From Paragordius varius (taxonomy: Eukaryota > Animalia > Nematomorpha), in contig OZ176051.1 of assembly GCA_964247055.1 (NCBI GenBank), positions 9,734,001-9,798,000 on the forward strand: a stretch of DNA of 64,000 nt. Reading direction: 5' to 3'. Below the pieces are notes generated by a model. The model had not been told where the DNA came from. It was given only the letters and a program-made list of their open reading frames with translations, and searched no databases. Position numbers and translations under genes: made by a program. This document shows, piece by piece, positions 16,048 through 53,199 of the stretch (the stretch's first letter is position 1; every line of letters starts with the position of its first letter).

Positions 16048-16541
16048 CTAATCATATTTTCCTAATATATCTGTGTCTCTGAAAATATGGTATTCCTTAT
16101 CTTCAAATTTTACGGTCATTCCACCATATTCTGGCAAGAGTACTTTATCACCAACCTTTACACTCATTTGCATATGAGAACCTTTCTAAAATAAAAAAAA
16201 AGATTTTTTCACAAATAAAATAAATTAAAACTAAAAAGCTTACATCATCTCTGGAACCAGGACCAACAGCAATGACAGTAGCATTCAATACTTTCCCTTG
16301 AGATTTTTCGGGCAACATTATACCGCCTTTGGTTTTAGTTTCAGGTAAGAAACGTTCAACCAAAACACGATCAAACAAGGGTCTAAAGCGCTTCAAAACC
16401 ATTGAGGCCTAAAATTTTAGTTTAACAATATATTTTATGCCAATCATTAGATAAATCAGAAAAAAATTAGAGTTAAGTTATCATATATTATTCCAAAAAA
16501 TGTTTTTCATCATTTCAATATATAAAATTAATGCATACCAT
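16048..16541 (-). CDS. HSPE1: Mitochondrial 10-kDa chaperonin Hsp10; exons 16541-16539 (ATG only), 16408-16244, 16185-16048
   Basis: M|ASMVLKRFRPLFDRVLVER...GGIMLPE...VIAVGPG|KGSHMQMSVKVGDKVLLPEYGG...IFRDTDILGKYD*; canonical splice sites. Confidence 0.96.
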
Positions 16542-21632
<5,091 letters not shown>

Positions 21633-24926: not shown

Positions 24927-27900
24927 ATGATTTTCTTTATTTTAATACCGTTAATACCATTTGTTGGAGGTAATGTAAAATATTTTTACAAATATATTTT
25001 TAAAAAAACTGTTTAATCAAAGTGTAAAATTATTAGTGTAATGTTCTGTTAAATTTGATGTATTAACTTTTAAGTTATATTTAGGTCTTACGGTGATAAC
25101 ATCGCCTTCAGTCTTTGTGGATCGCATAACATATGGACCGACGTCTCAAAAGAATATGGTAATTATTTGGAGGAATCCAACTATTTACTTGCAAGAAATT
25201 GTGCGTAAAAAACTTTATTCGGATGTATCTTTGTTAATCACGATAAAACCAGTACGGATCGATCCAGAGAGTATAATAATATATATATTTCAAATTCACC
25301 CTCAATTCAAACTCACCCTAAAATAAATTATGTGGTTTTTTAAGATTCTTTTATATTTTTAAAAAATAAAATATCGTAAAAATATACTAAAAAAATAATA
25401 ACGAATAGAATATTTGCCCAAAAACACATATTTTGTTTGGGTGAATTCGAATTGCAAATGGGATATATATATAGTCTAATCATTTTTTATTCGAATTACA
25501 GTAAAAATTAAAATCAGGCAGACAAAACATACAAACATAACGACAAATATTTTTGTTTTACTAAATTAAACAATTCACTTTTTTAAAATTAATGTTTTAG
25601 CTCTATAAATTATTTTATTACTATATATAATTAATTGTGTTACGAATATACATCTCTAATGACACTTTGATGTATCAAACAATGATTATATTTAATAAAA
25701 ATCAGTTTATAAAAGTCCAGCGCTACTTTAAAATATATGTTTAATTAAAATTTGACCTTCTATTTTTATTTAATGGATGGATATCTTACTTTTTAATTAA
25801 AATATATGGCATCGTATTCGCAATTTTTACCTGATAAAAATATATATGATTAAATATTATATTATAGAGAAAATGTATTGTATTCCATATTATAAATTAG
25901 CTATTAAATACGAAATGGTAGCATTCAGTCCAAAAAAATCAAAGGTGATCAAATTTACACTCAAGATGACTTATTCGAATTTGCAAGGTATTTATTATAT
26001 TAATTGTACTTATGCTACATATATTTTTTTCCCCAAATTTTACAATTATTTTCATTTAGAGTTGGAATTGAATGCCCGAAATATAAGATCTATATGCAAG
26101 ACTTATATGCTAAAAGGTATTATAGGGCCTGAATATTATATTTTAATTAAAATTCTTATTTATAGAAAACATAACTGCACCGCTAATTTCCTACAAAGTT
26201 TCCAATGTCACTTCTAGAAAAAATTATGTACTTAAGATGTATCATAATTCAAGTAAAATTTCTTCAATATTTTTTGCTATAATCGATATGTAATTATTTA
26301 ATTAACCATATTATACCATTTACGATTTAAATTCAATCTAAAATTCAAATTGATCCTAAAAATAAATTATGTGTTTTCGAACTTATATAACTCATACTAT
26401 TAATATAAAATATATTTTTACCACATAGTTCATTATTTTTTACCTATTATATTAATTTTACACAGAATTTTATATAATTATATTATGAAAAATAAAAGGT
26501 AATTTTTAATCTTGAAAAAGAACATATAATTTATTTTAGAGTGAGAATTTAAATTGTTCAAGGGTGAATTTATATTGTTCAAGGGGTTTAAACAATAAAT
26601 GGTATATTTTTGGGGTGTAGAATATGAAAGAACTGGAAAAATAAATGCCGGACTTGTCATAACATCTGTTTCTCCCAACAATACCATATACCTAGTTGGA
26701 GCTACAAAGAAAAATTCTACCCATACCTTTCACAGGGTAATCATGAAACCCAAACCACAACGCATAAAAAGAGGTGAGTTAGAGGGGTATTTGGGGTTTA
26801 TCTTAGATTAATTGTACATTTTTACTGTCTATCAAAAACTCAATAATATATTTACTGTTCATGTAGCTGATATGACAGGTATAATATGGCATGATTGTGT
26901 TAATTGTTAAACGGCATAACTTTTTTTGTCACAAATACTAACAAAATATCATTATGAAATATTTTTTTACCTAAATTTAACCTATCCTATTATATCTATT
27001 TTTTAGATTTATTCACTGGACCCTCTGAAGATGGTATGATATTAATTTTTATATGTGCTTTTAAAACATAAATAATAATGTGTCAATTAAATAATATTTT
27101 ATTTTTAACATTTCAAGATCTGCGTGAGTCAATTTTATCCTAAAAATAAAAAAAATTGCCAATCTTTTATTTAACTATTTATTTTATAAATATAGTTGAC
27201 TTCTTAGATGTTACCAATGATGAAATAAACGAGGTTCAAGGTAACAATTTTTTTTATATTTTGGTTGAGCAAATATGAATGTACATAAATAAAATTTGTA
27301 TAAACAAAACTCAAAATTCTAAATTTGTTTCGAATTTGGGTTATATACATAGTGGGGTTAAATATAAATTCAACCCTATGATAAGTTTTTTTCAAAAAAT
27401 ATCGAAATTCGGGTTTGGGTTAGCGGTTATCATACTGCAAAGTGCAATCATAACGCGAGCTTGTTTATAAATTTTAGTCAAATAAAAATTTTTGAACAGT
27501 CATGAAACTATATTAACCAGCTACCCTGCTTTTTTTAATATTAGTATGTTTATTTCATCGTGCACTGTATGAGTAACATTGCTATAATTAATTATTGCCT
27601 AATAGTAAATACAACAAAGGGCAGTATTATTGGCTTATAGTTATTCACTTTTTACTATTATTAACCAATAATATTGCCCTCTTTGTTGTATTTTGGCAAT
27701 AATTAATAACTTTCTAGCAATGTATATATACTTACTCATACTGTTATATTTTATCCATAAAATTGAAAGTATGAAATTTGCATTGTCGTAAAATATCAAT
27801 ATTATTTATTTTATGGTTAAGGCCCATTTATTTTTACGTACCGTATTTTAAGAATATATATATATATATCTTAGTTAAATTTTTTTAATAATACAATTGA

Positions 27901-30180
27901 TATGTAAGTAATGTTATCAAATTCTATCCAAATAATATTTGTGGTTGATTATACGATCACCCCATATATTTCATTTCTCGTGTGGTCATCTAGAAGTGGA
28001 AGAGAGCGACGTTGAAAGTGTGTATAGCGATGTGAGTGAAGCATTTAGCGATTTGCTGGAGGAGGAATCTGTGGTGGATCCAACGATAGAAGTTAGAGCA
28101 GCCCTACCATTACCACCGCCAGATTGGGGTTGGTTAATAATAAAAAAAGCAGAAATTATCTAATTTTTTTAGTTGGGTTAGGTTAGATTGATTGGACAAT
28201 ATTTGTAAAATAGTTGATTACTGACTGGATTGTATTTAATGTAAAATTATTACTGCGAATAATTATCCTTGCGGTAATATATACCATTTACACCTCAAAT
28301 TCCCCATTATTCATTAATTCAATGATTCACCCTTGAAGAATTTAAATTACCCTCAAACAACTCATACCTAAAATAAATTATGTATTTTGAATATTAAAAA
28401 CTAACTATACGTTTTATATTTTTAAACTATAAAATTTCGTTTAAAATAATTATAAATTTTGCCATAAAGAAATAATTCTTATTAATGATGAGTTATATTA
28501 GCCCGAAAACACGATTTATTTTTAGGGTGAATTCGAAATGTTCAAAGGGTAATTGGAATTGTTCAAGGTGAATATGAAATCAAGTATAAATGGTATATAC
28601 CAATATCAGGCTTTATGATTCATTAAAATAAACATTCATACTATATCATTAAATTATAAATTATTTTTTAAGATTTGGATTGATTTATAATACCTATACA
28701 TTATCATATATTCTTTGTTACAAATTAATGTAGTAGACGATTAACTTTTATATTATAACATATTTTATATAAGGTGTAATATGAATTGATAACCCAGATA
28801 TACCATTTACAATTCAAATTAACCCTTAAACAATTCAAATTCCCCCTAAAAATAAATTGTGTGTTTTTGGCTAACATATTCCTGATTAATATGAATATAT
28901 CTTTATGGCATAGTTTGTCATTTTTTAGTATTATTTTAATTTTAAACAAAAAACATATTTTATTTTAGGGTGAATTTGAATTGAGTGAATTTAAATTATT
29001 CAAGGGTGAATTTGAAGTGTAAATGGTTTATTATTTAGTTTTAGATACTTTAGATTGCAAAAAAATATATTGCAAACTTAGCATTTTTCTTTACGCTGTA
29101 ATGATTCTTTGAAAAATTTGAACTTTTTTACCATTTCATTTTTTGTGAGTCATTACATTTTGGGGTTTGGTATTGAACCCAAACTTATATATAAACTACT
29201 ATCAAAGTTTTTTGGTTACATTATGAAACATTGTTCTCCTGTTATCAATATAAATTATTTTTACAATTCAGCTTAGAGCAGGGGTGTCGAACACGTGGCC
29301 CTCCAAGTCATGTGTGGCCCGCGAAAAATTTGAAAATTCATTATTTGAAAGCAAAAGCTTACAAAGTCTAAATAATGATATATCTTAAACAAACTTTCTG
29401 ATAAAAACTCCATCCGACTGGCAATGAACTAAATGTTATATTGTGTTTGCATTTTACAGTCTTATGTTTGAAATCATATTTATGACTGTTCATATATGTT
29501 TCAAATACGCCCGCGAAGTCATTTGTGTTGACGCCCCTGTTCTAAGTCAAAATTTGATTCAACCTGGTTTAGAATTAATATATTAAAAATTTACTGTTAA
29601 TTGAATTAGAAAGCTTTCTAAGCTACTTATTTTTATATTAACTGTCATTAAACACTTCAAAAAATGGCGGCGAAAAAGTTTGAGATGATTTATTATCATT
29701 TTATAGGTTAAATTGCATGTTACAGTACAACTTTACCTATAATATTTTAGGATCTACAAAATTAGATCAATCCAATTTTAATAACAATGTCCGTAGAATC
29801 TTGAAAGTTATAAAACAACGGACATAACAAATTAAAACTTTTTTGAAACCTAAAATTAAATATCTATATATGACTTTTTTATTATTCATGATATTACTGA
29901 AACTTCATTGTTGTTCTTTCAAGCCCCTTTTAATTTAAGGCGATAATTAAATAGAGACAAAGCTTTGTAGTCTTTTGAGTATTTAATATATACCAAATTT
30001 ACATTGATTATGATTTTAATTATTTTAGATCAAGTTTCAACAAGTGACGGTAAGATTTTGTAACAACATTATATAATTATATTTTTCATTTTAATTTTTT
30101 TATAATTCAATAATTAATTTCTTTTATTGTGACCTTAGAATTTTTATCCGAAGCTAGCGGTATTATTACATAAATATATA

Positions 30181-30220
<40 letters not shown>

Positions 30221-33200
30221 CATATTGTGGTGTTGAGATATGAGAATATTATAAATAACAATCTAATTGCCATAAAAATGTGGAATATATAAAAAGCATA
30301 TGATTAATACTTTGAATTCTAGGGTTTAAAATTTGGACATCACGCAAAAATGAAATCATCATTTTGAAATTACTGTAAAATAACACAGTATCCACAAAAA
30401 TCCCGACGAAGCATATACATATTTTGTAGGAAAATATCAGGATTATCACGGTGATTTTGGTTTTAGCTTTTACGAATAATTTAAGAAAGTTATTTATGCT
30501 TTTGTGGTAAGTGCTAACCATGTCAAAAAGGGCAACATTTGCGCACACTTTTTTAAACTTTTATGCTTTAAAGTGCTTATAAAAATAAAGCATTTTTTTT
30601 AAAAAAAAATAATTTTTAGATGTGGGCTAGGAAAGTCCCATTTTTTGCTCTCCTAAAATGGGCTAGTTGTCTAAAAAAAGACTCAAAACTGTAATTGTGC
30701 ATTAAATAAATATATGCTAAATTTAATATTAGCCAAAAATATTTTTAAAAAAGCACACTTTTTTAAATATTAAATTTTTAGCAAAATTTTGTCAAACTTC
30801 GTACTGACGGTTAAATATATGGTATTATATAAACCTTATATAATTTGAGGATGCTGAACATTTCTTTTGCCTCATCAATTTGATTAAATTGTAATTCTTA
30901 ATTATGTTATATATCGATTGTGGTTAAACTAAATTTCACCAAAATTTAAATACAAAACCTTTAAATAAAAATTCAGAATAGAAATATTAATTACAGTATG
31001 TATTTCAATGGTGGCTTATTGCAAACTATAGTAGGGCAATTCGCGCAATAGACAACAAAATGTTGAATAAACAATTTTCCTTTCTTTTTTCCATACACTC
31101 CTGTGTTGCAAATTGCACTACTATACGATGAAAAAATAAGCTACCATTAAAATGCATATTGTATATCTGAAAGGTTTTTTGTAATATCTTAAGCGTTTTT
31201 ATACCGTTTCCTTTCCTCAGTATAGCATGAAATACGCTTCAACATAAATAAATTTTGAATAAGTTATATAACATTTTTCAGTCAATAGTAACACTTTTTT
31301 AACCAAAGCACCGTTTTTACAACCAAACGCAACTTAGTTCCGTTTGAATAAAAAATGTTGCGGCGTTTGGTTGAAAAAGTGTTTCTTTTGACTGAAAATC
31401 GTATATGCATTTTTAAAAAGTTAGTTGATATCAAATTTTTGCATATATTTAAATTTTTTATCGCGAATCCCGGTTTTCGCCTTTTCCTAAGAGACCTGAC
31501 CAATTTAAAAGAGATAAAAAAATTTGGACTTTTAACCCACATCTAAAAATAATTTTCCACATTTTTTTGCATTTTATATGTACTTTATATGATATATTTT
31601 AGTGATATTTTTTTGAAATGAAGCATTTAGCTTTCACCAAAAATTTTTTTTAAAAATTTAACCATTTCCTAATATGGAGCACTTAAAACAAAATTTTAAT
31701 AACTTTCTTAAATTACTCAGGACCAAAACATAAAGCACCCTTCCTGATACTTCCAATCAAATTATTTAGGATATTATATACCCCCGATTTAAAACACATT
31801 CTACTTTTATCATATTTTATATTGGCACTTTTTATTGAATTAAAAAATATTTTGTGACAAAATATGAATCAATTCACAATATACGTTTTATTAATTTTTT
31901 TGTAATCCACAGCACAGTTAATTACAGTAAAAATTAAAATACGGGCAAAACGTATAGAGACAATTTTTTTATCAAAATACAACCATACTATTCAAACATT
32001 AATTTATCCTATTTAAATCATTTAATCACAATCATAAAATATGTAATTGAGTGTGTTATCAATATACATGTCTATTTCATACTTTAGACTTTAAAACAAT
32101 GGTTATATAAAAAAAATAGTATAAAAAGTATGATTTTATTCTAGAAAAAAATATAGGTCTTTATATTTTTACGTTTTGTCCGTATAATTGTTTTTACTGT
32201 AATATCATTAAAAACCAGTCTCATATTTAATTTGTTGAATAATTTAATAAAACCGGGTTAAAAAACTACAAAAGATAATTAATCATTAATAATTTTTTAT
32301 GCATTTTTATAGAAGTAGATTATTGGGCCGATGTGTCGAGTATATACATTTAGTTAACCTTTTAGGCATCGCATCTGAAGATAACGCAGGTAAAATAAAG
32401 TCTTAAAAATAAAAAATAAATATATATCAAGGTAACTAGCCATAAATTGATTATAATTGGCATTACATGTCATATTTATGAAACTTTAAATTTTGAAAAT
32501 TTACATTACATAATCAACATATTATACATTCATTTCGTTAATTAAAAAAACTTTTTCTCATTCTCATTATTATCCTTAAAGAAGTATCCACCATTCTGAT
32601 TCCCAATATCTATAATTTATATTGGATGTTGAAATCTAGCGGTAATGCAGGTTTCAGGATAATCTAAAATTTTAATTCACCAGCAATAGTTAGCTGTTTT
32701 TTTATTGAATTTCGCAAAAAATTTGATTGATCAATAAAAATTCTAAGCATAATACTATCAAGATAAAATAATAATCAATTTAAAGAAAATTGAATAAGTT
32801 TGGAGTTATATTATATCACCTTGGTACCTAATATATATTTATGCATATCAATATGGGTATAAATAACCTCTCAATAAATAAGTCACAATCGATATAAATA
32901 TTGATATAATTACTTTAACATGTATTTAATTTATAAATGAAAGATTCAAATAAAACTTTAACCGTATACGAATGTAATTATTCATGGTTATCAGCAGTCA
33001 TCATTAAAAGAAGTTAGCTGTTTAATGTTTAATAATATCATCGGTATTATTTTTATAACTATTCGCTTAAAATTTAATAAAAAAATTATATGTTATACAT
33101 TTAATTTAGTGTATATACATATATCCTATATAAATTTTAGTAATAAGGTCACGGTGTATTAAATTATATTTTGATAGATATGTTTAAAATTTTTGTGGTG

Positions 33201-36200
33201 ATTTTAATTTTGGTTTTACCATTTTAGGAAATGTGCTAAGGGTGATTTCTCCATATCATAAAATAGCAAAATGGCGCTTTATGATAAGTTTTTTTACATG
33301 CTAAATTCTTAATCGACCTGGGTTGTAAAAACCTTACATATTTATTAAAAGTAGTGCTATGAGATTTTATATATAAGGTAGATTATGTTAAATGTTTCAT
33401 AGATTGTTTTAAGAATCAAATTTTGACAAAATATTAAAAGCATGTTTTTGATGGGGTTTAGAAGTATGATGGAAACGGAAAATAATTTAAATGTTCCAGA
33501 ATAGCTCTTCTAAATAATAAACTTTTTATCACGATAGTTTAAAACAAAAGAGTTAAAATAGTACCAAAAATATCAATGAAATCATAATTCAGCAATAAAA
33601 CCTAAACTTTTAATTGCTACAAGTAATTTTTGCCAATCTAAAAATTGAATTATGCAACACTGTCTAACAATATTTTAGCGTGTACTTATACCGTTCCACT
33701 TTAATTACTATAAAGTATGCAACAAAATATAAAGTGCTGTTTTATGTTTTGTTACCTAATCTAATAACGCGCAATCTCGGCTCTTTTGCGTTAATTTAAA
33801 AAAATGGCTCCTTTTAATAAATCAAACAAAAAATATAATTTTGAAAATATACAAAATATAGTTATATATATTTATAAATATTAATAAGTATAAATTAAAG
33901 CATTTATACCAATTTTTTAATAGGCGTTAACGATTTGTTAAGAAACATATATACAAAAGTCAAATATTTTTTTAAAATATCGTATACCCCAATTTTATGA
34001 GTGTAGTGTATAATTTAAAAATCGGGATATTTTTAAACCTTATATAAAATGAATTATCATATTATATCATTTTGTTTTGTATTGTACATATCTATATTTA
34101 GCCATCGATGGATTGGAACAGGGTAGTTATTAGATATAAATATTAAATTCATTATTTATATATGTGTTTTACTTTAAAATTGTGTAGGTTTTCAATTTAA
34201 GTGTTATTTTATTTATAAAATTTCTTAAGTTGTGTGTAAATAACGGCCATTTATAATAATTTATTTTATCTGTTCAAATAATTTTGCTGAAAAAATTAAA
34301 AAGTTTAAAAAATACGTCAAAAGTTTAAAACAGCTGTAAAAGCGCTCCTTAAACCGTTTCCAAAACGGTCACAATATTAATAAATTTAATTGCTGAATAA
34401 ATCATGTTTAAAGTAGTATAAGTATCGGTTTTTTATATTTCCAAACCTATAAATCTACTTTTGAAGTTTTAAACATATTTTGTAATTATTTTACTCGCCA
34501 AATACAAATCTTCGAAAGCTTCTAGTATTTTTTTAAAAAAAATCGTTATTAATCACTAACTAAAATGATAAAACTTTATACATTAACTCTATTTAAATTT
34601 TTGTTTGAATCGAGTTTAAGTAAAAAAAATTATTTTTTCATGCAAAGATTTGCAACAAATGGCTAATGTCGATGATAATGAAGAAGGACCTACAGATTTA
34701 AACGGTGGACCATCCGAGGAAAAACCGGGTTTAGTAATAATTTAAATGTTTCCAGATAACAATCAAAACAAGCAGGAAGAAAAAGATGATAGAGGTAGGT
34801 TATATTGTTATGTTAAACATTATAAATATAAACAGTTTAGAGCAAGGGTGTCCAACACGCAGTCTGCAGGCCTTATGCGGCTTCTTTCGGCCCGCGAAAA
34901 TTTTTTAAAAATAATAGAAAAATTTGTAAATATAAAATTACTATTTAATTTTAAGTATAATTGATATATAATCTAACATATTTAATGACAATGAGACATC
35001 AAAAGTGGTTGAAAAAATAGTAGTTTATATTGTGTTCGTAAATTTTTTGCATTCTTATGTATGAAATCCAAGTAATAATGCCCATTTTTAAATACGACCG
35101 ATCAGATATTTTTCTATAATCAGCCTGCAAAGCAATTTTTGTTGGATATCCATGGTTTAGATCTTTTTTAATTAAGGGTTAAGATTTAAATTGTATGAGG
35201 AGTTGTGAATGCCTTTACACTCGCCTGCTCATCGCTGACTCTGATGAGGAAAATTGCGTAGATTCGGCGTTAGAATTCTGCCACTTCACTGCCGAAAAAG
35301 TCCGGTTTTCTTTATTATATCAAAACAATTCACGTTATTATTTGTAACTTGATACTCTTTATTGGGTGGTGCCTATTTTAAACCAGCTAACTCTTATTTG
35401 AAGTTATAATTGTTAGTTAAACTAATAAGTGACATCTCTTAATATACAGTAAAAATTAAACATAAGACAAATGCTGTATTTAAAAAACCGGTATTTTTAT
35501 TTTTTTTAATACAAAAGTGTTTTTGACCTCAAGGATTTTATAGAGATATTGGTAAACACACAATAATATATTTTACAATATATATACATTTATATATATA
35601 TATATATATATATATTAATCACGTTCCTCACTAATCTTATTGTTATATTAATCTTCTATAGTAAAGATATCGGAAAATCAACCAAATGAAAATGTTCCCA
35701 AAGAAGAGGGTATCATAATCATTTATAACAAAATATCTAAATTGTTAAATTATAAAATTTGATCGACATCTTTAGAACCCAAACAAGGATCATCAAATGA
35801 GAGTAAGGAAAAATTTATTTTATTGGTTTGAGGATAAAATTTAGACATTTATAGTACATATCCGCTCAACTAAAAAATATAGCTATATTTTTTTTATTTT
35901 CTAGGAAATTTTATTTATTAATCCTATTATATTTATATATTATATAATTTAATAACTTATAACAATTTGAACTCAGGGTAGACACCCTATGGATTACATA
36001 ATATAATATCGAACTAAAAAATATTACCCAAACAGCTGAAATAGCAAAAAGAATCCTAATAAATGTATATGTCTTAAAATATTCTGTATAAAAGCAATTA
36101 TAGCCTGGACATTATAATTAAAACTAATGGCGTTCCCTGCAGAATAAAATTTGACCTTAACTCTTGTAAAGGACTTCATCTTATAATACTTACGAAACCA

Positions 36201-39200
36201 TATATAAAAAGTGGCTTCAACGGAAAATATCTCATATTATAAGACCACATGGATTAAATTATGGTTTAGGTCTACCCCTTAATAAGTAAAAAGTTTTAGT
36301 TTACCACCTTAACTCTTAGAAAAGGATTCGTCACCATTAGAAATGATTTTTTTAAAGCTAGATCAGCTATAATACAATAAGGATACCTAAGTCAGATGTT
36401 TCCTATAGAAACAACTGTTTCTGTTTTATTAATTATGAATTAAAAAATAGCATTAATTATAGCTTTGATTTAAATAAACATGGTATTTTCCAAAAATTTT
36501 GAATATAAAATGGCGTAATAGTTTGATGTAAAACTTTTGATTACAACAAAATTTAATATAGATATTTCGGCTCATCTATATAATTTTTATTAGTAGCATG
36601 AATTTAAATTTTCGTTCAGTAGTATTAAAGTTTTAACTTAAAAGGGGTATTTACCCCTATTAATCGAAATGTTAAGTTTCTTTTAAATATATATAAATGA
36701 TTTATAGCGCAGTTATTTTTATGTTTTAAGCATAGAAATTATACTTATAAATTTTTATTATAGGGAATGAGCCACGAATTGAAAATAGTCCCGAAGATAC
36801 AAATGACAAAAAAGGTAAATTAGTAAAACAATAAATGAATTAATATTTTTTTGGATAGCAAAATTATAATTAAATTTTAATCTTTATATGATTTGTATTT
36901 CATTAGCGCAAACTAAACCCTTTAACTAGAGTAGCCCCATTTTTCTATATTTTTCTTAAAAACTTCACAAGTGGTAATGTTTAACCATTAACCATCTCAA
37001 TCTCTAAATAGGTATAATTTAGTTAGGATTTATGAGGTTTATATCCCTAAATTTAAAAAACCTCATTCTTTGAGAGCAATGCCAAAAAAAATATTTCTAT
37101 TTTTCTTAAAAAATATTGAATAACTCTGAAAACGATTTTTTTGTCCATTTTTCACTTAAATTGCATAGAAGATAATATAATTGAATTTTTCATTTTTTTT
37201 AGTCACATTAAAATTGCCGGTGACACTTTATTTTTTCTTCATAATTTCGATTAAATATACTCGTTACAATGTAAAATTTCTGAATGTGTAACAGGCTTTT
37301 AAAATGTCCCATGTTTCAAGGCCAACAATATATAGAAGATTAGCATATGTAATTTACATATTTTGAAAAAAAATGTTTTAACTTTAAATATATATAATAA
37401 TATATATTATAACTAATTAATGAATTCTAGCTATTATATCTTAGTATGGGCCCAGTACACAAAATAGGGGTTTATTAAATAGTAAAAAAAATATATATTT
37501 TAGATACTAACATGTATCTGAATTTGTTTTTGGGCTTTGCTTGGTCAAAATTATCATTTTGTGGAACTACTTTCTCTTTGTCATAAAATAGCAAATTGTG
37601 CATATTTTGCTAATTAATTCTTTTAATTAAAGCTAAATCATTTCAAAAATATCATTAAGTTAAATTAAATTTATACTTAAAAAAACAGTATTTATAATAA
37701 ATTTAAATTGTAAACAGAGGCAAGTCGCACATTTGCGTAGATTGGCTGAGTAATGCTAGTTTATGACATTAAAAAATAGTTAAAAAATTTTCTAAATTCC
37801 TTCTGAAGAGGGCTTCATCTTATTTAAGAAATATGGTGGAAACGGTAAATTAATAAAATTTGCAATACTTTTACAATATATTTCGATGATGCTGAACATT
37901 TGTAACACCTCAAAATTTTGATCAAAATATTTTGCTTATTTAATAACAAATTAAATAAATGTGTTCCAAAAATTTTAACTTTAAAAAAGATAAACCTTAA
38001 AAATATGAGGTCATAAAAATTTTAATTAAATAATAAAAGCATTCAAATACCTTATCCATCAAATTTTTAATTTTTAATTTTTCGTAAAAAAAAATATTTT
38101 TTGATATTCAAACTAGCATATGATAAAAATTGTTCACCCACAATCTCAAATTAGGTTTTATAGTGAGTGGCCCAATTTAAGGGCATTTAAAAATTTGCGA
38201 CTTTCCGGAGTTCCGACTAACACTTAGAATTAATATCAGTTTTATAATTTATAATAAATAATGTTATTGGAATTAAGCATTTGGCTTTTACTCAATTATA
38301 TTTTATGTATGTAATTTTGATTTTCAATATTGTGTAATTGCCGCAAAAGTGCAATTTTTTTGGATTACTCGTAAGGCTAAACCAAAATCACCATAAGATT
38401 CCTGATATATGTATCTATTAAAATATATGTAGCTCCTAATATATTTTTTTATAATGTGTTATAAATTAAGTCTAAAACTAGGCACCTAAATTGATCCATC
38501 TTCACTATTTTTCATAGCAAAGCAAATTTAAATATGAATTAATTTAATGTAAAAATTGAGAATTTTTATATGTTTATTAGGGCTTGGAAACAAAACCTTT
38601 ATTTTGATTAACAGTTTTTCCTATTCGATATAAAAAATTTGAGGTAACTGGACAAAACTATTCCTTTAATCTGTTTTATTAACATGTATGATGTATACAT
38701 TATATAGTGGAATTACCCAAATCACCAAGGATCCCTAGAGCCAGGCAGATTAACCCACAAATACCTAGGGTATTAAATAACGCACTCACAAACGCTATCT
38801 CAAGTATTTTTATTTTTAAAATAGCTTAATACCATATATATTCTATATAACTTATATACAATATACATATATTGTAATAGCACAACTGAGCGCTATAGGT
38901 AAACAAAATTAATTTATATTAAAAAAATACTATTATATTCATTTTGCTTTTTTAAGCTGGAAAAGGTACCATGGGTGCTCTTGTTATAGGTGGAGGTTAA
39001 ATTGCATAATAAATCATCTTAGGTATCTTATTGACAGCAATCGGAGGTATTATTAATTAAAATTTTAGGTGCGATTGGGACCGTTTTGGGTGCAACAAAA
39101 TCAACTTTTTTACGTAAGGCATCTTTATTTATCTATATTTTATATACTGCACATTGCGTTTTAAATAAAAAGCTTAATTCTTGGATAGGTAGGGTGATGG

Positions 39201-39229
39201 GTTTCAGCATTCGAAAAGAGAAATGGTAA
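24927..39229 (+). CDS. Orphan micro-exon gene: signal peptide, FN3-like/beta-rich ectodomain, RIKR site, acidic microexon stalk, Gly-rich hydrophobic helix, basic tail
   Basis: Exons, all joined in phase 1: 24927-24969, 25085-25270, 25868-25987, 26060-26116, 26166-26252, 26621-26773, 26867-26878, 27007-27033, 27118-27123, 27208-27240, 30029-30049, 30139-30159, 32313-32339, 32366-32389, 34102-34122, 34648-34728, 34756-34794, 35662-35709, 35776-35802, 36764-36814, 38957-38995, 39023-39046, 39069-39113, 39189-39229. Weaker candidates: 27994-28128, 29751-29792, 32582-32641. Starts MIFFILIPLIPFVG; ends GALVIGGGILLTAIGGAIGTVLGATKSTFLRRVMGFSIRKEKW*. Confidence 0.75.
25281..25472. mobile_element. Short MITE of the 1204-1565 family, in an intron of the micro-exon gene
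   Basis: TTCAAATTCACCCTCAATTCAAACTCACCCTAAAATAAATTATG ... GGGTGAATTCGAA; starts about 10 nt after the donor at 25271. Confidence 0.7.
26312..26606. mobile_element. MITE of the 1204-1565 family
   Basis: TATACCATTTAC ... AAATGGTATA; internal sequence TAAATTATGTGTTTTCGAACT shared with the 1204 copy. Confidence 0.8.
28278..28599. mobile_element. MITE of the 1204-1565 family
   Basis: TATATACCATTTAC ... TAAATGGTATATA. Confidence 0.8.
28799..29030. mobile_element. MITE of the 1204-1565 family
   Basis: TATACCATTTACAATTCAAATT ... GGGTGAATTTGAAGTGTAAATGG. Confidence 0.8.
29279..29539. mobile_element. hAT (Buster-like) MITE
   Basis: CAGGGGTGTCGAACAC ... GTGTTGACGCCCCTG; both flanks have a central TA but are not identical. 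Confidence 0.7.
30994..31161. mobile_element. Palindromic Tc1/mariner-type MITE (TA flanks)
   Basis: TA|CAGTATG ... CATATTG|TA; second copy at 43138-43327. Confidence 0.75.
31925..32199. mobile_element. Tc1/mariner-type MITE (TA flanks)
   Basis: TA|CAGTAAAAATTAAAATACGGGCAAAACG ... CGTTTTGTCCGTATAATTGTTTTTACTG|TA; related ends near 25499 and 35448. Confidence 0.75.
34843..35154. mobile_element. hAT (Buster-like) MITE
   Basis: CAAGGGTGTCCAAC ... GTTGGATATCCATG; 8-bp flanks GTTTAGAG/GTTTAGAT. Confidence 0.8.
36480..36671. repeat. Degenerate half of the TTAA-type MITE
   Basis: Resembles 23380-23589 (AAAATGGCG..., GGGGTATTTACCCC, AATCGAAATG|TTAA). Confidence 0.55.
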
Positions 39230-39309
39230 AAGCCATATACGAGTAGCGAATGCCTTTAACACATAATCAACAAAAATTTTTTTTATTATTTTTAACATAG
39301 GTAAACTAA

Positions 39310-41385
39310 TACTGTGCGCAAAAAAGGGGGGTAAAAAATAAACAAACATGATTTTTATCTAGAATAATAAGAAATTCCTTGGAAAAGGAGGACCCCAAAA
39401 ATTTTGGGGCAAAAATGCGCCCCAAAATAAAAATATTCCATTTTTTCGTTTTTGACTAGTAGATTTTTGTCCATATTTTTAAAATTTATTGAGCAAACAT
39501 AATAAAACTTTTATATATTATATAAAACCAATATATTCTTAAAAATACATAAAATTATTTTAAAGTATCAATAATTTTTTTTATTCCACAAAAATAGAAA
39601 TTCGTAAATTTTATGACATTGTCAAAATATATTATAAAAAAATATTTGTAAGAAATCCATATTGTTATTATTATTTAAGTTTATGACTTATATATAACAT
39701 ACCAAAGAGTTTGTATATATAATAAAGAGTATGTATCCTTTTAAGTACTTAAAAAATTTGTATTTTTTGAAAAATTTTAGCGATTTTTGTTGCATTTTCC
39801 TCATCTGCTTCTCACTGTTTCATAAATACAGTATCAGTAATCCGCAATTTTCAAATGCGAATACTTAAAAATCCAATAAAACTTCCAGATTATGAAATTC
39901 CCTTTACTTTGGATAAAAGTATATATATATATATATATATTATATAACATAGTTAATAAATTCAATTGCAAATTGAATAAAGACCTTTTTTGCTATATAT
40001 ATGGAAGGTATCATCGCCCTACAAATTTGATTTAAATAACTGAACAAATAATTACCTATTACAACATGTATTTTGCTAAGAAATCAGTTCATTACAAGGA
40101 AATATGAGCCCACAGCAAGGTAATTATACTAATTCCGGTGGAGGGCTACAGACCAAGATGGAGAACGGTTCCATCAAACTCTCAAACATATAGAAAAAAA
40201 CTATACTAGTTCCAATAGTTGGTGAATACTATTGGAATCACTTTATGTCTGACTAATATATTCATTAAGTATAAATAAATTTAAATTCTTATATGAATTT
40301 TAAGTGTTGTTGTTGGGTTAGACTTGAAGAGATGTTGCAGGAGCAATTTTTGCAAATGAAGTTTGTATTTGACAATATCTTGATAAGACAGGAACATTTA
40401 TATTTTAAAATTTTGTAGAAACCTAATTAAATATTCTTATTGCAAAATAATGCTAAAAATTCTATCGAATAAAAATATATCCATTTATTATAAGTTTTTC
40501 AATATAAATAATTGTAATAATTGTTAGATTTATAATTTGGCAATAGAGTTTCTGGAAGTAGATTATTTACAAATGTCAGAATAATTTTGGTGCAAGGAAA
40601 ATTCTATTTTGTAAAATTACATGAAGAAAATATACGTGAATACAAATAAAATTTTACTTAAAAAGCTAAATATAGTGTATATAGCAAAAAAAGCTATTTA
40701 TATTTCCGATGCTGCTTTCTGTATATCAAGTTTAATTAATTTTATTATCTATAGATTAAATAGTATATAAACATTTATCCAAAGTAATGTAATGAGAATT
40801 TCATAATCTTGAAATTTTATTGGTTTTTTCAGTATTCTTGAAAATTGAGGATTACTGATACTGATACTGTATTTATGAAACAGTGAGAAGCATGTGAGGA
40901 AAATGTAACAAAAATCCCGAAAATTTTTCAAAAAATACAAATTTTTTGAGGGACTTAAAAAGATACATAGCCTTTATTATATATACCAACTCTTTGGCAT
41001 GTTATATATAAGTCATAAACTTAAATAATAAAAACAATATGGAGTTCTTACAAATAATTTTTTTATAATATATTTCGACAATGTCATAAAATTTACGAAT
41101 TTCTATGTCTGTGGAATAAAAAAAATTATTGATACTTTAAAATAATTTTATTTATTTTTCTTAAGAATTAATTAGGTTTCATATTATATATAAAAGTTTT
41201 ATCATGTTTGCTGAATAAGTTTTAAAAATATGGACAAAAGTCTATTTCTAGTCAAAATGAAAAAATGGAATATTTCCATTTTGGGGCGCATTTTTGCCCC
41301 AAAATTTTTGGGGTCTTCTTTTCCAAGGGATTTCTTATTATTCTAGATAAAAATCATGTTTGTTTATTTTTTTGTGCGCACTGTG
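39310..41385. mobile_element. Long-TIR (~610 bp) DNA transposon derivative, probably Chapaev3/CMC type
   Basis: 39310-~39925 is an inverted copy of ~40765-41385. Ends (T)ACTGTGCGCA ... TGCGCACTGTG with TAA on both sides. Core remnant GNMS..., DQDGERFHQTLKHIEKNY (40151-40204), then EYYW. Confidence 0.7.
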
Positions 41386-42400
41386 TAATAATACATTTGT
41401 AAATAATAGTCGTGTTTTGTATAAATCAAATATTAAATTTTTTTAACACAAAATGTTTTATTGCCTAATCATGTATAATAAACCAAAGAGATCCAATTTT
41501 ACTGATAAATTTTGTCTTATTTGTCTATTTATAGATTTATAAAACAAAAAATATATTATAAAAGCAAAAAATCAAAATCTTCCATTTTAAAATTTTAATA
41601 GCCGTTTTGAAATTAACTTTTTATATTATATCTTTTGGCATTTATTTCTATATATGGTTTTCGACCCCAAATCCAAATTCCAAAAGCTTATCTATTTGAC
41701 CAATTTGCAAAAAACCGTGTTATAGTAAGACCAACCGTAGAAAATTTAAAATTTTCCGACTAGCACCAAAAAAAATTAAGGATAGATTTGTATAAATGTT
41801 ATATAGTTAGGCATCTAAATTCACAAAATTTTTGTATAAAATGATAAGCTCTAATTTTGCAATATATGAAAGGAATAACTCGTAAGGCCTAAATCAAAAG
41901 CATACTAGAAATGCCATATATTTATACATCATATTGTATATTTTACTGAATAACTTCTTCCTCTGATTTCATACACTGCAAAATCTGACAAAAACAGTGT
42001 ACAGTCGTGCGGTCTATTCTCTATACCTGGCATATCCAACACAATTAGCTTCGCCGACCGCATTTATCTACATCATATGGGCGTTTATAAATATTTCATT
42101 GGATTTTAAACGTAAAACAGTAAAATGCAAATACGATAAAAAATGTTAATGTGTTGCAAATAGATGGTTCTTCTATCCTAAAATTTGTTTAACAAATATT
42201 TATAGGCCTGTTGACCGCGCATTGGATATATCAACTCTATACTATTATCTCTTACTTAATTTACTATTTTATAAAATAGCATCCAAAAGCAATGAGCTCA
42301 GTTTAGTTGCCATGAATGGTAGTTAATTTTTACTATATATATGTAAAAATTACGATATACGGTCATTACAGTAAAATACTAAATATATCTTGTTACATAG

Positions 42401-44092
42401 GTGTCCCTGGAGAAAAAAGTTTGACATTGTTTTACATTGATAGCTACAAACTTTGTACTCAAAATTCCGGCAAACGCTTCATTAGACCCAGAAAGTATGA
42501 AAATTTTTAAAATCTTTTTAGCACCAATAAAAAGGTTTGACAAGGAATCGAATAAGATATTTTATGATGAGATCTATCACGTGGCATCCTATTTAATTAA
42601 TCAAACTGAGGACTGTCTTTACATCAATATTAATATCCCAAACACAGGTATAATGATTTTAATTAACTTACATCTGCACCTATAACATGTTTAAATGACT
42701 TATGAAACGATTTTTATTTTGAGTTTTTCTCCTAGATCCCCCCAATTTTAGTTAAAATTAAATTATTATTATTTACTATACAGTATGTGACTTGATATTG
42801 ATATTAACTGACTGGCCATTAATAGGTCCACAATATATTCCTATTTTAGTGGACTGTGATAAATCAATATTAATTATTTTATAGTTGTGAACAAAGGTAA
42901 TTGCTTTGATCGCAAAGTACCAAACTATTGTACTCAAAAAATTGATGTGTGGCTCAATGATTCAATAAATCTTATCGTTGATTACGAGTTGCCCGAAAAA
43001 TTTTATAATTATTGTTCGGCGGTTGTAGATCTGTTTGGTATTCAAAGAAAGTTTGGTTCAATAAATTCCATACCGGTAAAATATTATAATAATGCAATAT
43101 TTATTAATTAATTAATTAATATGAAGAATAAGATATACAGTAGTAGGCATTTTAATAGTTGCTTATTTCACACTATAGTTGGGAAATTTGCAACACAATC
43201 GTGTATGGTAAAAAGAAATAAATGTAAATTGTTCATACCACATTTTGTCGTTTTTTCCATACACTACTGTGTTGCAAAATGCTTAACTATAACAGTGTAA
43301 AATAAGCAGCCATTAAAATGCATACTGTATTTGTTTAGGAGGCCCGATTGTTTGTGGAACATTTACAGCCAAGCTCATACTTGTTGCAAGTGGTTAATCG
43401 TCTTAGAGATTTGTTTTGCCAAATATATGCGGAATTTATCTGTAATTAGTTATTTACTTATATATTATGCCCCTTTCAGTCGTATTTTCACACTTAAACT
43501 AATATAAATGTAATCATAACCCAATAAAATACTTGACGTATATACGAAACACAAACCTTTGTCGTTATCACCTAATCTATTTTATATGTATGATAAAATT
43601 AATTTTGCTTATAACATGTTCAATAATCAAACAGTGCATTTTTTCCACCGTTTTTAAATTCAAATTTTTTAAAGAATACATGGAATTAGAGATGTAATCC
43701 CCTTTTAACCAATTATACTGAAATGGCTGATAACAAAACATAAATGATTATCATAATATATGATTAGAGAGTTAAAAGCAACAGGACAATGAATATCAAA
43801 ATAATAAATGTGGTTAAAAAAGAAAAAAATATTTTGGTTTATAAGTTATTAAGTAAAATCAAATATCGCATTTTTTTCGCGCATGGTATTGAATAAAATT
43901 TAGTATGATAGATAAAAATGCGTCAACCAAATTTATTTTCATATAATCAAACAATTTTACAAAAATTATCAACAAAGGGTCCTCGAAGAATTTACAAGGT
44001 TCTAACCAAAAAATTGTACTTTGGCGTCAAACTTAAATTATAAAAACTAGTTTTATGCGGTATTGATTTTTATTTTAACTATCTTGGATTTA

Positions 44093-44134
<42 letters not shown>

Positions 44135-45953
44135 CAGGGGTATCCAACACAAATGGTTTAGCGGGCCGCATTTCGGATCAAAAAATCCGACGGTCCGCAT
44201 TCGAAAAATATATGGGCATCCACGGATATTTTATTGGATTTTATCTATAAGAATGTAAACACTACGCATCATATTAACCATTTTTGCTGGTTCAGTGCCA
44301 AATTTATGAAAAATTTATACAAAAAATTTGTTTTTTTACATAAATTTTTTATATTTTGCATTCAAATTTTATCGCAGGCTGGGCCGTATGTTAGCTGCCC
44401 CTGATATATAATTTACCCCTATTATATTGCGCCAAAAATGATTTAGGCCTTACATAAATTTTTTTGATAATTTGCATCAAAGCGGAAGTATAGCGTCTTA
44501 TTTTTTTACATACTATTTCTATGCAATCCGATGCAAAAAAACAGTTTATATTCTAGCTTTTTTGATAATAATCAAATATTTTCACCTGGAATTTGGAATA
44601 AATATTTGCTTATATGCCATAAATCCCCAATTTTGGGCATATAACTCCTTGAATTGAAAACTATGCAGATAGTACTTTTTTGCATCGAATTGTATAGAAG
44701 AGTATGTATATAATTCACTATTCAAGTATAAAAATTTACGCCTACTTCGATTTAAATGCAAATTTCGAAAAAAATAGATAATTCATTTTAAACGCTATAA
44801 ATTATAAATTTCATACAAATAAATAATATTAAGGTAGTAAAATGGCAATCAACAATGTTTTTACTGTTCAAATTAGACGCCAAAGTCAATTTTTTTGGCT
44901 TAAATTCGGGTGAGTATTTCTGGTACTCTCTAAAAATTTATCATGTTTATCGATAATGTATTTAAGATCTCTAAGTTAGGTATAAACAAATTTAAAATAA
45001 TTTGTTTTTAATATATACCCGGACTAAATATCATTTGATAGCTTTTAGTTGTATTGTAATTAAACAATTTTTTGGTGAAAATTTAATTTTTCTTATCATA
45101 TATATTACATATAGTTGATGAAGATACTTTGCACGGTAATGATATATTTTTTTAGTAACATTGTGTAACCTAAGCTCATTCATTTATTATGTAAATTTAA
45201 TATTTTAGATTCGAAAAAAATAAATAATAAATTGTACGACGTGTCATACTTAAGTCAAATACATGTTTTTCTGTATTTAGAAACCGACAACATCATTCAG
45301 GACGATTACGTATGTGTGCATAATGAAACATTAGAAATATGCACAGCCTATTTGGAGTATTATCCAAATGTAGCCTATACTATTTTTGTTCAAGACAAAG
45401 AAATGAATATTATTTATGGAAGTAATGTCCATAAAAATCCTGTAAGTTTTGTTCTCATTTTTTACACAAACAAACTAAAATATTCCCATGTTGTGATTGC
45501 AATTGTTAAATCCGTGAAAGAATGATAAACAAAAATTAAATAAAAAATTAACTGAAAATTAATATTTATAAAATGAATAAATTATATGTGAAACCCTTTG
45601 TAAATATTAAGTGCATACAAGTTATGTACTTGTTAGCACTCATCAGTAGGACACAACTATTTGACATGGGGTTCTCGCATAACATTGTAATTTTGGTATA
45701 AATGCAGTCGGTCATACAAATATTAAATTAAACATATTTGAACGTAACTAAATTGATTTCGTTTGTCATTATTTCACACGAAACTGTTAACATAAAATCA
45801 TTTACCATTCCAATTCTATGTTGTAATTAGGGTTCCGAATGTCTTGAAGTTACTATAGATATCACAACTTTGGAGGTGGGACATGAATATATGGTGGGAT
45901 ATAAACCACATATATGCCCAACCAGAATGGGAACTTTAGTTTTTAACATATAA
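42401..45953 (+). CDS. Orphan, probably secreted FN3-like protein; likely paralog of the 24927 gene; 5' end unresolved (41866-42361)
   Basis: Exons 42401-42418, 42444-42494, 42522-42647, 42885-43037, 45209-45441, 45831-45953. FN3-like strands LEYYPNVAYTIFVQD and ITTLEVGHEYMVGYKP; many Cys and N-glycosylation sequons; DPE| intron position shared with the upstream gene. Confidence 0.6.
43138..43327. mobile_element. Palindromic Tc1/mariner-type MITE
   Basis: TA|CAGTA ... ATGCATACTG|TA; homologous to 30994-31161. Confidence 0.75.
44097..44132. repeat. (TA)n microsatellite; similar tracts near 2266, 30185, 35591, 39923 and 63383
   Basis: Uninterrupted TA dinucleotide runs. Confidence 0.9.
44135..44403. 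mobile_element. hAT (Buster-like) MITE inserted at the end of a (TA)n tract
   Basis: CAGGGGTATCCAAC ... CTGCCCCTG; identical 8-bp flanks ATATATAA. Confidence 0.8.
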
Positions 45954-49179: not shown

Positions 49180-49441
49180 TATAATGTATCGAATATAACG
49201 AATCGGTGATGACAAAACAAAACAATGATAATTTATTAAGAATTTAGATATATTTATACTTTTTGATTAATGATAATTTTAACATGCATGTGCGTCACAA
49301 TTATAAGAAATGTCTTTTATTCTACGAATATATATATAAGAATTCCACGAATAATGACGCACAAACATACACGTGCGATTAATATAAAAATATATGTAAT
49401 AAAATATAATGATGCAACGTTGTAGTATCCACTACATAACA
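49180..49441 (-). repeat. 3' LTR
   Basis: Base-for-base identical by eye to 53200-53461; element-strand ends TGTT...TATA. Confidence 0.95.
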
Positions 49442-52400
49442 TTCTCTTCCTCCTCTACAAAACGCTTCGGCGGTTTTCGAACTCGGTCTGGATACCGCCT
49501 GGGGGCCTCCCCCTGCTCAACATCCGATCTCAGTTGATCGGCATGTTTTCGCATCTCTTTTCCATCTTCATCCTTTACTTCATAGGATAACGGCCCCGTC
49601 CTTACTTCTACCGTACCCGGTCGCCATCCTCTTGATGTCTCGTTCTTTATAAAAACTGACTGATCCGGTGTGAATTCTCTTAAGGGTCTCGGTGGCGTAC
49701 TTTCTTTAGGCGTTTCTTTATCTTGCAACCAATTCAACGGTGTGTTGATGTTTCTCTTCAAAAACAACGATGCGGGGGTCGTCTTAATGCCATGAATTAC
49801 GATAGGCCAATAAAACATTATTTAAAGCCTCTTGACTCTTCACTCCAGGCATCATCGTGGAACGGAATCTCGACTTCAACGTATAAATTACTCTTTCTAC
49901 CAAACCATTTGTCCTTGGGTGGTAGGGAGCCGACGTCACATGCTTAATGTTCCAGTTTGTCATCTTATCCCGAAAATTGAACGATTTGAAATACGTAGCA
50001 TTATCAGATACTAGCATTCTTGGAAAACCAAAAGATGAAAACCATTTCTCCAATTGTTTCAGTATCACATCAGATGTAATACTGCTCAGTATCTCCACCT
50101 CCACCCATCTTGAGAACGCGTCAATCACAACCAACCAATATTTACCACACATGGGACCCGCGATGTCCACATGGAGTCTTTCCCATATTCCCACATTGAA
50201 GTTCCATTTATATACCGGATTCTCAGCCACGTTCGCTCTGTTCCTCTGACAACACTGACAGTCGTGTACTAACTTTTCAATGTCTTTATCCATTCCGGGC
50301 CAAAACACCAACGATCTAGCTGTGTTTTTCATAGCAACGATACCCGGATGTCCAACATGAAACCAAGCCAAAATTCGTCTTCGTGCAGCTGTTGGGATAA
50401 CCAACCGATCACCAACATATACGAAACCATCGGCTTGTTTGAGATCATTTCTAACGGGTTTGAATGCGGATAATTCCGGTGTTGACCAATCATTATTTTT
50501 AAGTGCCATACGTAGTCGTTTTAACAGTTTATCCTCCAAACAATCTTTTTTGATTTGCGTTTTATTTAAATTTAAATCCACGAATGCGATTTGTCGGATT
50601 TTTTCGGCCACATGTTCATCATCATCGTCTACGGATGTCTGACTCTTTTCGGGAAGTCTTGAAAACACATCGGCCATGTTTGTCGATCCCGCAATATATT
50701 TCATATCAAAATCATACGCGGCGGCCTTGTAGATCCATCTTAACAATTTACAGTTTTTAATATCACTTAACTTCCGATTGTTTCCGAATAAATGAACCAA
50801 CGGCTTATGATCTGACCAGACCTCACATTTCTGTCCATAAATATAATAATGGAATTTTTCTAAACCAAATAACAAAGCCTTGGTTTCCAATTCAATCACA
50901 GAATAATTTTTCTCTGCATTCTGGCATTTTCTTGATGCGAATGCAATTGGTACCATTCTGTTATTTTCCATTTGCAGAAGTACCGCTCCAAAGCCTTTTG
51001 TAGACGCATCCACTTGTATTATTGTTTTATTATTTATGTTATAAGTGGCCAGTAAAGATTCTCTTTATATTAAGTTTTTTGCTTGCTTGAATTCATTTTG
51101 ATGTTCTTGTGACCATCTCCATTCCTTTTTGGATCCTGTTAGTGCATGTAGATTACTAACTTTGACATGTAAACCAGGAATAAAACGTTCATAAAAATTG
51201 AGCAATCCCAAAAATGATCTTAACTCAGTTTTATTCGTGGGTGTTGCACATTTAGCAATGGCGTCGAGCTTATCTTGTACAGGACGGATTCCCTGTTTTG
51301 ATAACTCAAACCCCAAAAATTTTATATTCTTCTGATACAGCTTTAATTTATCTTTTCTTAGTGTAAACCCGCATTGTTGTAACTTTGCTAAGGTCTCGCT
51401 CAGATTTCTATCGTGTTCCTCTTTCGTTTTACCAACAATCAAAACATCGTCGAGATAAGCCATTGTGCCCCTGCAATCTTTGAGTACCTCATCCATTATT
51501 CTCTGGAAAAGCATGGGAGAAACCTTCAATCCAAATGGTAGGCGATTAAATTGGAAATATCCCATCGGGGTAGTAATAACTAAATATTTTTTACTTTCCA
51601 CATCCACCGGAATTTGAAGGTATGCGTCCTTTAAATCAATGGACGAGAACCATGTGGATCCCGCACATTTAGACGCGATCGTGTCAAATGTCGGGATAAT
51701 CTGAGATATGTTCTCCATCAAAGAATTGATAGTTACCCGGAAATCAGCGCACACCCTAATTTCCCCATTAGTTTTTACGACGTTAACCGTAGGAGTCGCC
51801 CATTCCACATGGTGTTGTGTTGGATCTACGGGACTCACTATTCCCAGGTCTATCAGTCTCTGTATTTCCATCTCTACTTTACTCTGTAGTGCCAATGGAA
51901 TTCGCCGTGCAGCGCAGACTTTTGGTATTGCATCTGATCGGACATACAATTTGACAGGATCACCGTTGTAACAACCCAATTTCCCGTTAAAGAGTTTTGG
52001 AAATCGCTTGAATACATTGTCATGACCATTATTATTATTAGATGTTATTTGATTAACACTCACGTTATCCGGTAAGGTCATGCCACAACCAATGATCCAC
52101 GGCAGCCCAAATATGGGAGATAGCTCTTCTTCCGTCACAAAACATTCTAATTTCTTCGTAATATTTCCCATTGTTACATTGACAACTGTTTTTCCCAAGA
52201 GTTTGATTGGGTTGTTTCCGTAGGAAGTTAATCTGGGAGCACTTTTTAGTAACGGTGCTCCCACCGTCTTCCAAACGTTTTTATTAATCAAAGAAGCAGC
52301 AGCTCCAGTATCAAAAACCATACTGACAGCTTGGCCATTAATCATAGCGCAAATGTTCGCTTGTGTGCCCCATTTATTATAATTAGCGTTTATATTATCA

Positions 52401-53188: not shown

Positions 53189-53199
53189 CGTCGCCAGAA

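Follow-up and report, generated by a model that had tools for sequence, protein, structure and literature searches.

Candidate introns of 22-27 nt between frame-neutral micro-exons in a lineage-specific gene of the horsehair worm Paragordius varius

The DNA considered here is a stretch of 64,000 nucleotides (nt) from Paragordius varius (contig OZ176051.1, positions 9,734,001 to 9,798,000 of the forward strand), which we call the window. It is very AT-rich, with about 25% GC outside a retroelement, in line with the 26.9% GC of the Gordionus montsenyensis assembly. The window carries the conserved genes HSPE1, HSPD1, CRCP and ABCF2 together with an orphan gene that we rebuilt from the sequence on the plus strand, from 24927 to 39229, a span of about 14.3 kb. 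A sequence-only reading of the window had placed four GT..AG stretches of 26, 27, 27 and 22 nt in this orphan gene as ultra-short introns. All four are present where that reading put them, in the 3' half of the gene (Table 1), and they are the subject of this work.

The reconstructed gene has an unusual architecture. All 13 internal exons have lengths divisible by three and are read in phase 1. They include micro-exons of 27, 27, 24, 81, 39, 18, 39, 24 and 45 nt, each of them symmetric (phase 1-1), and the introns of the model measure 115, 855, 49, 368, 233, 5279, 26, 2258, 27, 4086, 58, 27, 22 and 75 nt. Elsewhere in the window, 7-80% of the sequence of the long introns recurs, and these introns are thus repeat-carrying. 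The encoded product may be a type I membrane protein that runs from a signal-like start through an FN3-like ectodomain ending in RIKR and an acidic stalk to a Gly-rich membrane helix and a short basic tail. Exon 1 may supply a signal peptide, and the four larger exons between 25085 and 26773 would encode the ectodomain, which appears to be beta-rich. The acidic stalk is of low complexity and made of micro-exons. Inside the 2.3-kb intron lies an AG..GT-bounded islet of 24 nt (34102-34125, GC 0.5, open in phase 1 as IDGLEQG), a possible further micro-exon outside the model.

Table 1. Candidate introns and the exons and intron of the rebuilt gene around them (window positions)
Feature	Position	Strand	Description
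Candidate intron 1	32340-32365	+	26 nt, GTATATACATTTAGTTAACCTTTTAG, GTATAT...TTTTAG, GC 23%
Candidate intron 2	34729-34755	+	27 nt, GTTTAGTAATAATTTAAATGTTTCCAG, GTTTAG...TTTCCAG, GC 22%
Candidate intron 3	38996-39022	+	27 nt, GTTAAATTGCATAATAAATCATCTTAG, GTTAAA...ATCTTAG, GC 22%
Candidate intron 4	39047-39068	+	22 nt, GTATTATTAATTAAAATTTTAG, GTATTA...ATTTTAG, GC 9%
Exon 1	24927-24969	+	ATG, short hydrophobic N-terminus MIFFILIPLIPFVG, ends in phase 1, donor GTAATG
Larger exon	25085-25204	+	120 nt, phase 1-1
Larger exon	26060-26116	+	57 nt, phase 1-1
Larger exon	26166-26252	+	87 nt, phase 1-1
Larger exon	26621-26773	+	153 nt, phase 1-1, ends RIKR, consensus GTGAGT donor
Exon VDYWADVS	32313-32339	+	27 nt, AG/GT bounded, GC 0.44, upstream of candidate 1
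Exon IASEDNA	32366-32389	+	24 nt, GC 0.50, donor GTAAAA
Exon of acidic stalk, LQQMANVDDNEEGPTDLNGGPSEEKP	34648-34728	+	81 nt, open in the phase-1 frame only
Purine-rich exon, NNQNKQEEKDDR	34756-34794	+	39 nt, GC just 0.31, donor GTAGGT
Exon GKGTMGALVIGG, start of membrane helix	38957-38995	+	39 nt, GC 0.49
Exon ILLTAIG, middle of membrane helix	39023-39046	+	24 nt, begins with GT right after the acceptor AG
Exon AIGTVLGATKSTFL, end of helix and start of basic tail	39069-39113	+	45 nt, donor GTAAGG
Inferred intron	39114-39188	+	75 nt, divisible by three, without a stop; the sequence fits both removal and retention
Last exon, RVMGFSIRKEKW (probable)	to stop TAA at 39227-39229	+	read from the sequence as the end of the open reading frame

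Retention of any of the four candidates puts a stop in the frame used by the sequence-only reading, as that reading had claimed. Two of them have lengths of the form 3n+2 and 3n+1, and the two whose lengths are divisible by three carry in-frame stops. Candidate 1, if kept, brings a stop as well as a frameshift, and candidate 3 brings a stop immediately. All four have the ends of U2-type introns, with GT at the 5' side, AG at the 3' side and a pyrimidine run of 4-6 nt before the AG (TTTT, TTTCC, TCTT and TTTT in candidates 1 to 4). Putative branch adenosines can be read in TTAAC (A at -9), TAAAT (A at -10), TCAT (A at -7) and AAAA (-7 to -10), respectively, but motifs of this kind are common in sequence that is 80-90% AT, and an A found 7-10 nt ahead of the acceptor says little.

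Stronger evidence than the GT..AG pattern comes from the coding character of the sequence on either side. We trained a table of codon log-odds on 957 homology-backed codons from HSPD1, ABCF2 and CRCP of the window against non-coding trinucleotides. Each of the seven flanking exons scored best, and positively, in the phase-1 frame that the model requires: +3.5 bits for 32313-32339, +6.7 for 32366-32389, +23.0 for 34648-34728, +7.8 for 34756-34794, +12.9 for 38957-38995, +3.7 for 39023-39046 and +3.6 for 39069-39113. By chance, such agreement in seven of seven exons would have a probability of (1/3)^7. The summed score of 61.3 bits compares with 11.0 +/- 7.8 bits for a null of matched non-coding segments, AG..GT bounded, open and rich in GC, and none of 20000 draws reached it. 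The four candidate introns themselves score negatively in every frame. The flanks therefore behave as coding sequence in frames that removal connects, around an interior that looks non-coding. Across candidates 1 and 4 the coding frames differ, and so a removal of 3n+2 or 3n+1 nt is needed there.

The exons of the model have 37.6% GC, against 37.9% in 1777 nt of validated coding sequence, about 25% in the window and 9-23% in the candidates. Within validated coding sequence, none of the 41 GT..AG stretches of 20-30 nt has a GC content of 0.33 or less, and none of 1630 windows of 22 nt is as AT-rich as candidate 4. Enumeration of the possible junctions gave no in-frame GT-AG join other than 39047-39068 for the two exons on either side of it. 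At the candidate 1 junction, the other in-frame GT-AG joins would remove 8, 14 or 41 nt, and at the candidate 2 junction a 22-nt GTAATA..CCAG variant (34734-34755) shifts the frame.

Joining the exons gives the following products. Removal of candidate 1 yields VDYWADVS-S-IASEDNA, removal of candidate 2 yields ...GGPSEEKP-D-NNQNKQEEKDDR, and removal of candidates 3 and 4 together yields GKGTMGALVIGG-G-ILLTAIG-G-AIGTVLGATKSTFL. A continuous Gly-zipper-like helix had been described for this last product, and a continuous glycine-rich hydrophobic run is there: 28 uncharged residues in the joined helix MGALVIGGGILLTAIGGAIGTVLGA, followed by TKSTFLR, with a Kyte-Doolittle 19-residue mean of 1.99. 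The run fits a glycine-zipper single-pass anchor, defined by a stretch of about 20 or more uncharged residues, a recurring small-xxx-small pattern and basic residues after it, if both candidates are removed and only then. When the 24-nt exon between them is skipped, the uncharged run shrinks to 20 residues and the hydropathy is 1.48 rather than 1.99. An inner membrane-compatible mini-exon is rare in GT..AG intervals of 60-90 nt (16 of 6693), and 39023-39046 is the only one of those 16 with at least 7 residues and a GC content of at least 0.4. Moreover, of the 1191 double-tiny-intron configurations that the window offers, a continuous membrane-compatible run occurs at this locus only. At both joins of the helix region the acceptor directly abuts a GT (39021-39028, AG|GTATCT; 39067-39074, AG|GTGCGA), so that each join regenerates a donor-like site. 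The 24-nt exon 39023-39046 could in principle act as a recursive-splicing exon.

The ordinary introns of the window provide a measure of what is normal in this genome. The sequence-only reading had held that the conserved genes contain longer introns only, which was so in those that we checked (HSPD1, ABCF2 and HSPE1). Among introns 1-8 of HSPD1, placed by homology, the shortest are about 68-76 nt, and the one intron of HSPE1 is short and of the ordinary kind. Validated donors are GTACTA, GTATAA, GTTATT, GTGATT, GTAATT, GTAGTT, GTATAT and GTATGT in HSPD1 and GTTTAT in ABCF2. A T at +3 occurs in validated donors of HSPD1 intron 3 (17569-17820, GTTATT) and of ABCF2 (58703-59085, GTTTAT), and G at +5 is nearly absent among the nine donors that we read. 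The 5' splice sites of this genome follow an unusually degenerate consensus. Weak as the donors of the four candidates look (GTATAT, GTTTAG, GTTAAA and GTATTA), they are no different in kind from these validated sites. Therefore, no special donor is needed, which argues against a special signal behind the distinct splicing control that had been suggested for the tiny introns. The same reading had also proposed an ultra-short class beside kilobase-scale introns filled with transposable elements. Its second half is supported within the model, in which the tiny candidates accompany introns of 2.3-5.3 kb whose repeats are found again in the window; the two kinds would thus coexist in one gene. The first half, a separate class, is at most conjectural: the sorted lengths leave a gap (22, 26, 27, 27, then 49, 58, 75, 115 and on to 5279), but in a small number of introns.

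Taken together, these data lead us to favor, as the probable though by no means certain explanation, that the four stretches are true spliceosomal introns, GT-AG and 22-27 nt long, and that the lineage-specific gene holding them consists very largely of frame-neutral exons. Our confidence is higher for the helix pair (22 nt and 27 nt) and lower for 34729-34755, the weakest of the four. In the proposed mechanism, each intron would be recognized across its own length, its borders set by the abrupt step in AT/GC content, and the branch adenosine would lie 7-10 nt upstream of the acceptor. Within the helix, the 27-nt and 22-nt introns would flank the 24-nt exon, placing two introns and one exon in 73 nt. 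Because 73 nt cannot seat two spliceosomes at once, introns 3 and 4 would have to be removed successively. A premature stop follows in every case of retention, so that messages left unspliced would not be productive. The wider proposition is more tentative, and we put it slightly below an even chance: that 22-27 nt introns are routinely spliced anywhere in the genes of a large, repeat-rich bilaterian genome rather than at 5' ends alone, including a pair that encloses a 24-nt exon in a 73-nt part of the helix-coding region, and that this happens in a transcript from which introns of several kilobases are removed as well.

Several observations weigh against the reading as introns. The gene may be real while its small exons are skipped or alternated and longer introns are used, for example 38996-39068 (73 nt), which drops the 24-nt exon, or 39047-39188, which drops the 45-nt exon. 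A stretch too short to splice would then enforce mutually exclusive use, and steric-hindrance models of mutually exclusive exons are established. Every exon is divisible by three in phase 1-1, so that leaving out any one of them, or using any subset, keeps the frame. Without the 24-nt exon an uncharged run of 20 residues remains, and the short validated introns of the window measure 49-76 nt. Junctions 1-3 do have longer GT-AG alternatives (33-108 nt): those of candidate 3 span 33-72 nt, and candidate 2 has nine in-frame ones of 39-108 nt. These longer alternatives, however, delete sequence with coding-like codon usage, including at candidate 3. With 12, 7 and 14 residues, each helix exon is too short to cross a membrane by itself; two or more of them have to be joined, and hydropathy falls when the middle one is left out. 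Adjacent exons are also dissimilar in sequence, unlike the duplicated exons usually found in mutually exclusive pairs. We regard exon skipping as an unlikely explanation of the locus, though it is the main rival.

It is also conceivable that the model is over-fitted, with some of the islets not being exons or the gene being decayed or unexpressed, and that the GT..AG stretches are chance features of AT-rich DNA, picked because they hold a frame open. The window contains 183 loci in which an AT-rich gap of 20-30 nt separates two GC-richer islets, and about 3% of these have GT..AG ends on either strand, which is the chance rate. The full pattern (AG, an exon divisible by three, a GT..AG stretch of 20-30 nt, another such exon and GT, the frame being open once joined) is matched by 31 candidates across 128 kb, and the enrichment in our gene is modest: 4 phase-1 candidates in 14.3 kb against about 1 expected (Poisson P ~0.02). 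No homology-validated tiny intron that could act as a local positive control was found in HSPD1, HSPE1, CRCP or ABCF2 of the window. ABCF2 instead supplies a convincing false positive, showing that frame-fitting alone also yields false tiny introns. As the bare pattern occurs at the chance rate and the ABCF2 look-alike is false, frame-fitting by itself is insufficient; codon usage and membrane-helix continuity are stronger evidence than the bare pattern. Over-fitting would further agree with three facts: without splicing, 32313-32389 and 38957-39046 can each be read through in another frame; the purine-rich exon 34756-34794 has more than one open frame; and neither a homologue nor a Pfam match was found in libraries that lack this species. 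Paralogous micro-exons or a shared module were not found within the window, and the codon-score null draws on small pools of 3-22 segments each. Opposed to over-fitting are the seven of seven exons that score best in the same required frame with a total far above the matched non-coding null, the uniqueness of the helix continuity in the window, and the upstream exons with their weak FN3-like similarity and consensus splice sites. We judge over-fitting to be improbable. Assembly or sequencing errors, in the form of spurious short insertions into a continuous coding sequence, are hardly credible. AT-rich long-read assemblies can carry indels, which is the sole reason for raising such errors, and nothing positive points to them. 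Four independent inserts of 22-27 nt that all have GT...AG ends and a short pyrimidine run do not resemble indel errors, and 92-97% of sampled 31-letter words from 33200-39199 are present in two runs, likely from the source sample.

The look-alikes in the window deserve description in their own right. The ABCF2 case (59063-59085, a 23-nt GT..AG stretch) is not an intron, as homology shows that the real intron spans 58703-59085 (383 nt). The look-alike adjoins the real acceptor and passes all composition and frame filters, which makes it a useful false-positive control. Other pattern matches, at 11264, 13523, 57492, 8397 and 7956, are repeat copies, and the remaining ones lie inside the long terminal repeat (LTR) retroelement. 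Copies of one short repeat resembling a miniature inverted-repeat transposable element, at 7915-8656, 57300-57620 and 36430-36675, share CACTTGGATACAACACACTCATTTTAGTCCTTCGATTCAAATTGGGGTAG and look like tiny-intron patterns when the minus strand is read. A GC-rich repeat core resembling GAGCAAGGGTGTCCAACACG...GGCCCGCGAAAA occurs at 29272-29326, 34840-34898 and 44140-44201, within introns of both this gene and a neighboring orphan gene, and is probably another small transposable element.

An exhaustive HMMER search with the 50-amino-acid exon against 1.84 billion representatives found no orthologue in which exons or intron positions could prove conserved, a point against the proposed introns, and no sequence relationship to known families of micro-exon genes (MEGs). 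With phmmer, the same exon gave a weak match (E 1.3e-4) to the FN3-like repeats of bacterial P0002 over residues 10-35, and its match to P0001 was rejected as a repeat artefact. Pfam searches exon by exon returned nothing usable, and for the terminal open reading frame 39071-39226 a word-based search of proteins gave no candidate. Exact-product look-ups of 39164-39349 on the minus strand, HSPD1 exon 1 and 26599-26808 were blank. The protein collections do not contain this species, and even for HSP60 exon 1 the best full-length matches are at most 76% identical; blank look-ups therefore say nothing about expression. The orphan status claimed for the gene thus holds as far as these libraries reach, with the species itself unrepresented. 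The genome papers on horsehair worms in the library consulted do not mention introns.

Other features of the window complete the picture of the locus. HSPE1 (16151-16408, minus strand) and HSPD1 (from 16704, plus strand) are placed head to head with about 300 nt between them, an arrangement also found in other animals. The coding region of the LTR retrotransposon occupies 49432-53245 on the minus strand, with open frames of 726, 409 and 128 amino acids, a Pfam order of aspartyl protease, reverse transcriptase, RNase H, integrase zinc-binding domain and integrase core, and a GC content of 34-39% against 25% around it. The neighboring orphan gene (42280-45953, plus strand) has candidate introns of its own at 42419-42443 (25 nt, GTTTGA) and 42495-42521 (27 nt, GTATGA); retention of the 25-nt one leaves the frame open but shifted. 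A weak likeness, the only one that the search for paralogous parts gave, connects ITYGPTSQKNM in the micro-intron gene with IIYGSNVHKNP in this neighbor, each followed by GT. It hints at distant paralogy of the two orphan genes and at an alternative phase-0 end at 25158 of the exon in the micro-intron gene.

How do the candidates compare with known short introns? The ciliates Paramecium and Nyctotherus have ultra-short spliceosomal introns of about 25 bp (PMC5014332). The candidates resemble these in being GT-AG, 20-30 nt long and AT-rich, with a premature stop always following from retention. In those ciliates, however, tiny introns are all but universal and the genomes compact, whereas here the tiny candidates would share a gene with repeat-carrying introns of 2-5 kb; the ciliate introns are also proven by RNA, while ours are candidates read from the sequence. 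Dicyema japonicum, with a mean intron length of 38 bp in a reduced genome of 67.5 Mb and 5,012 genes (PMC6736024), is likewise an animal lineage with very short introns. There, the shortening is genome-wide, whereas the conserved genes of our window have introns from 68 nt to several kilobases. Human ultra-short introns (<66 nt), with cases of 43-65 nt (PMC4463651), are spliced in a manner dependent on SPF45/RBM17 (PMC8363638). They too form an unusually short subset with truncated pyrimidine tracts beside long introns, but they are about twice as long as the candidates, whose donors are of the same kind as those of normal introns here. They set a precedent for a distinct factor requirement, although no factor dependence can be inferred for the candidates.

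A parallel in gene architecture comes from Schistosoma mansoni, whose MEGs combine symmetric exons of 3-81 bp with introns of up to 5 kb (bioRxiv 10.1101/2023.06.21.545858). The gene described here shares a signal-like first exon, many frame-neutral exons of 18-81 nt, kilobase-scale introns and a lack of homologues outside its lineage, and it likewise has very short symmetric internal exons between longer terminal exons. It differs in that the micro-exons of MEGs are separated by long introns, as described, and not by introns of 22-27 nt. Its predicted product also finishes with a membrane helix and is encoded in part by larger, FN3-like exons, and it is without sequence similarity to theirs.

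If confirmed by RNA, these would be spliceosomal introns of about half the usual animal minimum, located beside kilobase-scale, repeat-laden introns, with two of them parted by an exon of only 24 nt. Such splicing units would lie far below the limits assumed in animals for both intron definition and exon definition. The question bears on how recognition of the 5' splice site and the branch site can be fitted into about 20 nt. Standard aligners and gene finders impose a minimum intron of 20-50 nt or more. They may break or miss genes of this kind, and lineage-specific surface proteins of a parasite would then stay hidden. Either way, the locus carries a warning for the annotation of this genome, as the ABCF2 look-alike shows that false tiny introns can arise from frame-fitting alone. 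Finally, the finding bears on the origin of micro-exon genes. Under the wider proposition, sequential removal would be obligatory and would shape the micro-exon genes specific to this lineage.

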